Source: Glycera tridactyla (lineage: Eukaryota). From it: 64,000 bases of DNA. The DNA is taken from assembly GCA_965644265.1 (NCBI GenBank), contig OZ286471.1, positions 46,810,001 to 46,874,000 on the forward strand, in the 5' to 3' direction. Below the pieces are notes generated by a model. The model worked only from the letters and a program-made list of their open reading frames with translations. It had not been told where the DNA came from and made no database searches. The first letter of the stretch is position 1. The number at the start of each line of letters is the position of its first letter. Below are positions 60 to 63,426 of this stretch, one piece after another. The position numbers were made by a program, and so were the translations under genes.

Positions 60-290
60 CAATGGTATGTGATCAGCCCCGTCCAACCACACAGGCACCT
101 ATCACTACCACCAACAGTGACTGTTATATCCCAACATATGGTGGGACAGCTGGTAGCTCGATCTGTATTTTCCCATTCGAGTACAGAAATGTACGATACA
201 CTGGCTGTTCGACGGTGGATAATGGCGAGATACCTTGGTGCTACACCTCAGTATATTATAATACTGACCATCTCTGGGGAAATTGTTATG
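60..290 (+). CDS. Exon 1, FN2-like module, type A
   Basis: tttacag| ... |gtatgt; 231 nt; [10 protein letters not shown]...[22 protein letters not shown]...PWCYT...WGNCY. Confidence 0.92.

Positions 291-63426: not shown

Follow-up and report, generated by a model that had tools for sequence, protein, structure and literature searches.

The locus described here raises the question of why the modules of a tandemly repeated fibronectin type II (FN2) gene should carry two cysteines (Cys) more than the textbook module, which has four Cys and the core disulfides 1-3 and 2-4, and to which partners these additional cysteines are bound. It lies in a 64,000-nt stretch of the genome of Glycera tridactyla (assembly GCA_965644265.1, contig OZ286471.1, positions 46,810,001 to 46,874,000 of the forward strand), which as a whole is referred to as the window. 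The core cysteines are designated C1 to C4; CysA is the extra Cys five residues after the preceding C4, encoded in the next exon, and CysB is the extra Cys 14-15 residues before C1. Based on the results of this study, the explanation that we favor, with a probability of about three in four as a whole, is a tandem array of FN2 cores, each of which would be closed by an N-to-C clamp, i.e., a third disulfide between its own CysB and the CysA of the following exon.

A regular-expression scan of both strands of the window found 48 FN2-like cores of the form C-x13-C-x10-WC-x14-C on the plus strand (164-63422) and one chance match on the minus strand. All 48 cores are followed by a phase-1 donor (the C4 codon, one further codon, one nucleotide and GT), and 47 of the 48 FN2 exons have an AG acceptor with a good pyrimidine tract exactly 8 nt 5' of a Cys codon; at the start of these 47, the Cys is preceded by a split codon and two residues (xxC). 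The sole exception is the FN2 exon at 59946, which opens G-Cys-IISTSGG and is without the usual start because a mini exon of 78 nt at 59452-59529, with clean acceptor and donor, carries the missing Cys together with a linker. One more exon, at 50978-51193, encodes a Thr/Ser-rich segment of 71 residues without an FN2 core, begins xxC and ends with VDC-I at its donor. The predicted gene model (60-63426) comprises 50 exons (48 FN2, one core-less and one mini linker exon), all of them bordered by AG and GT, of phase 1-1 and of a length that is a multiple of three. The spliced sequence is 11,334 nt long and comprises 3,777 codons, none of them a stop and 290 of them for Cys. Upstream of each core, the open frame holds a Pro/Thr-rich stretch and the two further Cys; the 44 linkers, 739 residues in total, contain 28% Thr, 13% Pro and 6% Ser, i.e., they are Pro/Thr/Ser-rich and mucin-like, and such a Thr and Pro content would be typical of O-glycosylated stalks.

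Comparisons among exons 1-23 gave ratios of nonsynonymous to synonymous substitutions (dN/dS) of about 0.14-0.2 with synonymous sites (dS) saturated, and the modules are therefore old and under selection. When all modules were compared with the exon-masked window by tblastn, no significant further FN2 exon was found in the long introns, and a scan for xxC-starting symmetric exons recovered only those at 50978 and 59452. The gene extends past both ends of the window, which probably contains an interior part of a single, very large plus-strand gene for a secreted, mucin-like tandem-FN2 protein.

The module is an ordinary FN2 core in its profile, length (about 61 residues), spacing and predicted fold. 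When seven exons were compared with Pfam, as the first-pass annotation of the window had proposed, all seven matched PF00040 (fn2) over profile positions 1-42 with 36-57 bits (gathering cut-off 22.2 bits; E 6e-9 to 3e-15), and none matched Kringle (PF00051) at E<=1. Among the solved sequences, the FN2 modules of MMP-2 and MMP-9 come nearest. In alignment with them the four core Cys stand at FN2 spacing, the FPF, Y, WC, NY/Y and W/F-G-x-C aromatics are kept, and the residues of the aromatic pocket are conserved. The CysB segment, C-[YW]-[IV]-P-T-x-G-G, aligns with the N-terminal strand of the MMP modules (e.g., VVPTRFGN of MMP-9), which is free of Cys.

Structure prediction was applied to homologue units: residues 33-99 of P0064 (P0064:33-99), the nearest spliced homologue (48% identical), together with 71 relatives, and a register-homogeneous alignment of the copepod type. 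The AlphaFold 2 (AF2) model of the P0064 unit has a mean predicted local distance difference test score (pLDDT) of 87. It matches the FN2 modules of MMP-2, Endo180 and FN1 with a Foldseek template-modeling (TM) score of 0.75 and a VIA Z of about 10, and kringles weakly (plasminogen K2, Z 2.5; prothrombin K2, Z 2.2-2.3). The copepod-type model reaches a pLDDT of 90.7, with both terminal blocks at 84.

The cysteine pattern itself proved to be as regular as the first-pass annotation had described it. In the 50-exon model each module has six Cys, namely the four of the core and the extra CysA and CysB, with exon 46 receiving its CysA from mini exon 45; C-x4-C is formed at 48 of the 48 applicable junctions, i.e., those after a Cys-x donor, and all seven junction peptides that had been quoted were recovered. 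The spacing between CysA and CysB within the spliced exons runs, also as claimed, from 0 to 42 residues and includes CC (EICC) in exon 25 and CGC in exon 30. The spacing between CysB and C1 is 13-14 residues in nearly all exons, and CysA remains the third residue of its exon even where CysB is placed in another exon (45/46) or the core is missing (43).

The pairing CysB(n)-CysA(n+1) is preferred because the spacings of the extra cysteines to the neighboring cores are fixed while the spacing between CysA and CysB is free, down to CC and CGC; such close cysteines could hardly bond internally, which therefore argues against pairing CysA(n) with CysB(n). The N-to-C clamp is by far the best reading of the pairing and very likely, although unproven. 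That the Cys five residues after C4 would belong structurally to the preceding module is likewise supported. The peptide does not depend on the splice prediction, since in a two-module homologue from GCA_013332675.1 the sequence C4-L-D-K-V-C is contiguous in one exon; the donor there follows C4-E-G, as in the window.

Further evidence comes from homologues. A search of 1.84 billion representative proteins returned 1,237 matches, among which no annotated product of this gene was present, the nearest being unspliced single-exon open reading frames (ORFs) with 65-78% identity; a word-index search with P0064 gave almost no matches. Of the 150 best homologues, 41 contain two or more modules in which one Cys precedes C1 and another closely follows C4. 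The ends of 49 homologue arrays from other lineages with exactly two Cys per linker were then compared. In 31 of them the ends are of the clamp type, a single extra Cys preceding the first core and another following the last; 25 of these have a clean N-terminal context, and in 15 the trailing Cys is among the eight C-terminal residues of the protein. The C-terminus of Lepeophtheirus salmonis XP_040577589, for example, is C4-R-S-N-C. Loop-type ends, where both Cys would precede the first core and no Cys would follow the last, were found in none, ten arrays were ambiguous (fragments), and eight showed a different solution (Cys at -10/-14 and -1 of C1). In the copepod gene of XP_040577589 a single exon encodes CysB through C4-x3-Cys-K up to the donor, and in the sponge Corticium candelabrum the intron at the module boundary lies after C4-x-Cys, i.e., after the trailing Cys. 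The N-to-C clamp is thus supported by the array ends and by the copepod and sponge gene structures.

The third disulfide that the first-pass annotation had proposed therefore finds support in the spacings, the array ends and the gene structures, while the bond as such is deduced from sequence. Its further statement that the closing Cys is donated by the next exon holds in the window but is lineage-specific, as the copepod and the sponge encode this Cys with its own core, and x4 is not a general spacing: the register of the clamp varies by lineage, the trailing Cys standing at +2, +3, +4, +5 or +8 and the leading one anywhere from -2 to -17. The commonest register is (-8,+4), followed by (-9,+2), (-12,+8), (-12,+4) and (-2,+3), and that of the window (-14/15,+5) is rare; no simple zipper correlation between leading and trailing positions was evident across lineages. 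The clamp would be a widespread variant of invertebrate FN2 with variable register. Clamped FN2 was found in homoscleromorph sponges, a copepod and marine metatranscriptomes, and is old because it occurs in both sponges and arthropods.

Several points weigh against the favored explanation. The clamp disulfide is deduced from spacing, the adjacency of CC, array ends and exon structure; the splice sites are predictions for this species; and the ligand, glycosylation and tissue considered below are pure conjecture. The array ends come from other lineages, whose registers are unlike the (14-15,+5) of the window, and the eight arrays with another six-Cys solution mean that an N-to-C clamp is not the invariable outcome of extra Cys in FN2. 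The P0064 model is only moderately confident at its termini (blocks at 70 and 62), which is probably due to the mixture of registers in the alignment and to its rows from the window, in which the closing Cys is missing.

The alternative that survives best concerns the origin of the clamp. It was put forward in the first-pass annotation, which regarded the folded unit as an FN2/kringle intermediate: the clamp would be homologous to the Cys1-Cys80 bond of kringles, and the module a true intermediate between the kringle and the four-Cys FN2. FN2 and kringle are related members of the same superfamily (PMC8373733). The age of clamped FN2 would fit a relic, the weak structural alignments to kringles run end to end (residues 1..66 of the model against -3..81 of plasminogen K2), and a string like DN-x-G-x-PWCYT, which resembles the kringle motif, occurs in 30 of the 48 modules. 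The C-x4-C of the window equals the closing Cys75-x4-Cys80 of kringles. However, the status of an intermediate is not borne out by the profiles, as only fn2 matched, and Kringle was without a match at E<=0.01 also among ten homologues, including the spliced two-module P0064; nor is it borne out by the fold, in which a Z of about 10 to FN2 stands against 2.2-2.5 to kringles. Moreover, the register differs among lineages and x4 is in the minority, and the second, non-clamp six-Cys solution shows that extra pairs of Cys arise easily in FN2. The motif, found by the first-pass annotation in most modules and common here in its shorter form as well (WCYT in 38 of 48 modules; WC[SAG]TT in 1 of 48), is not coupled to the clamp, because, of 188 clamped modules from other taxa, only 9 have WCY. 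The clamp may be either a relic of the outer kringle disulfide or a repeated addition, and the relic is unlikely, if still to be taken seriously. A stronger version, in which clamped six-Cys FN2 would be ancestral in Metazoa as a shortened kringle that kept Cys1-Cys6, and the vertebrate four-Cys FN2 would have arisen by loss of the clamp, is rather doubtful; if it were true, the gene in the window and the copepod and sponge arrays would be surviving intermediates of the kringle-to-FN2 transition.

The remaining alternatives concern the extra cysteines themselves. They could be free or form intermolecular bonds, polymerizing the protein to a gel or fiber as in mucins, which would suit a very Cys-rich protein with mucin-like Thr/Pro linkers and the moderate confidence of the closest AF2 model at its termini. 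This is improbable: about 98 extra Cys at rigid distances from the cores on both sides are a better fit to an intramodule bond, the number of Cys per structural module at the array ends is even in other taxa, and both termini stay ordered in the register-homogeneous model. Alternatively, CysA(n) and CysB(n) could pair within one exon and form a loop round the Pro/Thr linker, with the core keeping its two disulfides. Both Cys do lie in one exon, Cys parity would also be satisfied within the window, and some linkers are short (five residues in exons 47 and 49), a common size for small disulfide loops. Such a pairing is very improbable in view of the free spacing between CysA and CysB, with CC and CGC among its values, as opposed to the fixed spacing to the cores, of the array ends that it predicts, which occurred in 0 of the 49 arrays as opposed to 31 with the opposite arrangement, and of the copepod and sponge genes, which encode the trailing Cys with the preceding core. 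Least credible of all is an artefact of the gene model, in which true transcripts would use other acceptors (several linkers contain other in-phase AGs) or skip exons and the mature protein would be without C-x4-C, since in every exon the acceptor used in the model is the best or nearly the best by its pyrimidine tract and stands at the same place relative to the conserved Cys, the xxC-plus-linker segment is kept by purifying selection, the same peptide is contiguous in the DNA of another assembly, and the skipping of any symmetric exon still results in C-x4-C.

In the explanation by clamped FN2 cores, each module would consist of an FN2 core with its 1-3 and 2-4 disulfides and an aromatic ligand pocket, to which the third bond between CysB and the next CysA would be added, joining the termini. 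A phase-1 intron would lie between the residue after C4 and the closing Cys, and an exon would therefore comprise the closing Cys of the previous module, a linker and the next module, still unclosed. Because each exon starts xxC and ends with C4-x at the donor, duplication, loss or skipping would leave all Cys paired. The modules could be pictured as closed beads hanging off an O-glycosylated string; tension in the chain might pass via the clamp disulfide and spare the FN2 fold, and the many pockets might bind collagen-like ligands multivalently, e.g., in the cuticle or matrix of the worm, annelids having a collagenous cuticle. Ligands of the collagen or gelatin type, as in MMP-2 and fibronectin, are suggested by the conserved pocket residues. 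A tandem array of this kind would stay evolvable even though exon and domain boundaries are offset by five residues, as each exon closes its predecessor and neither unequal crossing-over nor skipping ever leaves an unpaired Cys. If the clamp shunts load, such proteins could serve in cuticle or mucus as multivalent collagen binders that resist force.

All exons lie on the plus strand, and their coordinates are given here with the C-x4-C junction peptide that each forms with the next exon. The first part of the array comprises exons 1 (60..290, six Cys, CYeVIC), 2 (766..993, fn2 E 4.8e-13, CQgLVC), 3 (2192..2425, CQeMVC), 4 (3198..3428, CWeIRC), 5 (3860..4093, CQaMVC), 6 (4628..4861, CQaLVC), 7 (5219..5449, CWeLIC), 8 (5679..5912, CQaPVC), 9 (6362..6595, CQaLVC), 10 (7084..7293, CWeLIC), 11 (7733..7972, CQeIVC), 12 (10205..10450, CQaVVC), 13 (10695..10925, CRdIVC), 14 (11597..11830, CGaLVC, across a gapped intron), 15 (15193..15423, CQaLVC), 16 (16156..16386, CLeVVC), 17 (16874..17107, CQeTVC), 18 (17807..18037, CWeLVC), 19 (18816..19046, CEaLVC), 20 (19472..19702, CQeIVC), 21 (20493..20723, CLgLVC), 22 (21261..21506, CGaLVC) and 23 (21964..22176, CIgEEC), all FN2 exons. 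Among the 'Q-type' modules of these 23 exons, a 'W-type' module (C-Y-x-x-T-H-G-G-[ST]-[AS]-G-D-S ... L-W-S-N-C-[WL]) recurs every two to three exons, and once after six, in exons 4, 7, 10, 16, 18 and 21 (starts 3198, 5219, 7084, 16156, 17807 and 20493). This recurrence indicates a higher-order repeat.

The following FN2 exons are 24 (24623..24850, CRdEIC), 25 with adjacent CysA and CysB (27688..27852, CPdPDC), 26 (28570..28803, CQdEVC), 27 (29840..30127, CKeAVC), 28 (31816..32118, CEaTVC), 29 (32583..32870, CEaAVC), 30 with CysA-G-CysB (34564..34740, CRaIVC), 31 (36057..36275, CRdKVC), 32 (36735..36953, CQaEVC), 33 (38950..39177, CEdRIC), 34 (40033..40263, CYvAAC), 35 (40938..41150, CAeTIC), 36 (41515..41763, CLvDSC), 37 (42154..42345, CEeTIC), 38 (42777..42983, CQaEVC), 39 and 40, both with Thr-rich linkers (44011..44277, CKaTYC; 44898..45197, CEdSQC), 41 (46870..47103, CRaQVC) and 42 (49057..49284, CLeTSC). 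Exons 27-29 form a sub-family within the array. Their linkers are long (37-42 residues, the longest being the 42 of exon 28), are not Thr/Pro-rich and end with GG[YF]GYNGC (GGYGYNGC in exon 27), and CysB-[VI]-[VI]-Y-T replaces C[YW][IV]PT. Exon 37 has two in-phase acceptors 90 nt apart, at 42064 and 42154, either of which gives an xxC start. The downstream one is preferred; the upstream one adds a hydrophobic segment of 30 residues with two more Cys. The pair may reflect alternative 3' splicing or chance.

The last part begins with the core-less exon 43 (50978..51193, two Cys, CIdQIC) and continues with FN2 exon 44 (53349..53555, CRnPVC), mini exon 45 (59452..59529), which supplies CysA and linker for exon 46, and the FN2 exons 46 (59946..60116, starting G-CysB and with five Cys, CSdMSC), 47 (60663..60854, CLePSC), 48 (61627..61869, CLdPIC), 49 (62448..62636, CLdPVC) and 50 (63190..63426), the donor of which is at 63427 and the closing exon of which lies outside the window.

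The assembly is interrupted once within the array. A run of N at 11846-12008 opens 15 nt past the donor of exon 14 (exon end 11830), within the 3.4-kb intron 14. To the right of the gap this intron contains a (CGTC)n run (12482-12557) and seven to eight copies of a 170-182-bp minisatellite (12606-14108), so that repeats occupy 12482-14108, and exon 15 begins at 15193. No FN2 homology was detectable between the gap and exon 15 by tblastn of the modules, and the frame across the gap is safe at any true gap length because all exons are symmetric (phase 1-1). At 14482-14514 in the same intron, on the plus strand, there is a weak similarity to the CysB region of exon 49 (tblastn E 0.19), which may mark what is left of a decayed exon or be due to chance. 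The long introns in general are filled with tandem repeats, among them a 135-bp minisatellite in eight copies with 95% matches (9106-10178) and 67 copies of (TGTC)n (46027-46293). The (TGTC)n run yields spurious ORFs of 150-210 residues, and long intron ORFs (e.g., 46012-46641) were rejected as genes, being translations of this microsatellite without a Pfam match.

Some further observations were made among the homologues. In the second kind of six-Cys FN2 (P0016, P0019, P0024, P0063, P0072, P0117 and P0127), one additional Cys stands at -10 or -14 and the other at -1 of C1 (C-x-V-K-T-x-D-G-x...-C-C1), and the last module is not followed by a trailing Cys; presumably an N-terminal hairpin disulfide is formed in these, not an N-to-C clamp. 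A C-x4-C in the unspliced ORF of P0038 resulted from intron read-through and was excluded. In P0073 and P0111, which like P0179 stem from metagenome or transcriptome contigs, up to four matches to PAN/apple domains follow the clamped FN2 arrays, and P0179 has PAN plus fn2, by precomputed Pfam only; the layout of PAN with clamped FN2 recalls that of PAN with kringle in plasminogen and HGF. Clamped FN2 (C-x7-C1 ... C4-x4-C) is also filed under a rhizarian amoeba (P0132, EukProt EP00808_Paulinella_micropora_P020507), which may be animal contamination or a non-metazoan FN2.

Expansions of FN2 in invertebrates are known, and the present finding is a domain variant in a very large, otherwise conventional repeat gene and not a new kind of system. 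In public proteomes six-Cys FN2 is common, the proteins bearing generic names. The novelty implied by the first-pass annotation is thus restricted to its description, none having been found in the literature searched, outside the coverage of which two likely sources lay. The salmon louse genome preprint counts 192 FNII domains and cites the idea of a kringle ancestor (10.1101/2021.03.15.435234); extra Cys in FNII are not mentioned in those passages of its main body that were covered (10.1101/2021.03.15.435234). If six-Cys FN2 with a clamp is indeed widespread, the domain definition used for annotation and disulfide assignment would be altered, and the presence and register of the clamp would offer a concrete character for reconstructing the kringle-to-FN2 history across Metazoa.

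Compared with the kringles of plasminogen and prothrombin (PF00051), the unit in the window differs in most dimensions. It has about 61 residues and spacings of x13-14, x13, x10, x14 and x4, whereas a kringle has about 80 residues and six Cys at spacings of about x20, x28, x11, x11 and x4; only the last spacing agrees, and the first two are x13-14 and x13, not x20 and about x28. With kringles it would share the proposed topology (1-6, 2-4, 3-5), in which the clamp is placed as the Cys1-Cys80 bond, and its DN-x-G-x-PWCYT resembles their NPDND..GPWCYT. A kringle-to-FN2 transition was reportedly proposed by Patthy in 1984, and Ozhogina et al. in 2001 are said to have regarded the neurotrypsin kringle as a link between kringle and FN2. 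The neurotrypsin case is that of a shortened kringle, whereas the module here would be a complete FN2 in which an outer disulfide was either added or retained.

With the FN2 modules of vertebrates (MMP-2, MMP-9, fibronectin, Endo180 and the mannose receptor; PF00040) the modules of the window share 30-40% identity, the FPF, Y, WC, NY and WG residues, and the arrangement of one module per phase 1-1 exon. Unlike them, they add two Cys, at about -15 from C1 and +5 from C4, and no solved FN2 chain in the alignment has a Cys at the leading (CysB) position; they are also spaced by Thr/Pro linkers instead of being packed, and number about 50 copies in 64 kb. Further parallels are invertebrate. The L. 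salmonis proteins XP_040577589 ('epididymal sperm-binding protein 1') and XP_040579517 are likewise tandem arrays of six-Cys FN2 with Thr-rich linkers, and in a gene of this copepod (CM027733.2) each Thr-rich linker is a mini exon of its own, of 36-39 nt, between FN2 exons, which parallels the one mini linker exon of the window (59452-59529). Arrays of this kind, with a Cys before C1 and another shortly after C4, are also present in the sponges C. candelabrum (XP_062513883) and Oscarella lobularis (XP_065835124). These arrays differ from that of the window in having WCAT[ST] in place of WCYT, in forming far smaller proteins, and in their registers, (-8,+4) in the copepod and (-9,+2) in the sponge, with both clamp Cys encoded together with their own module.

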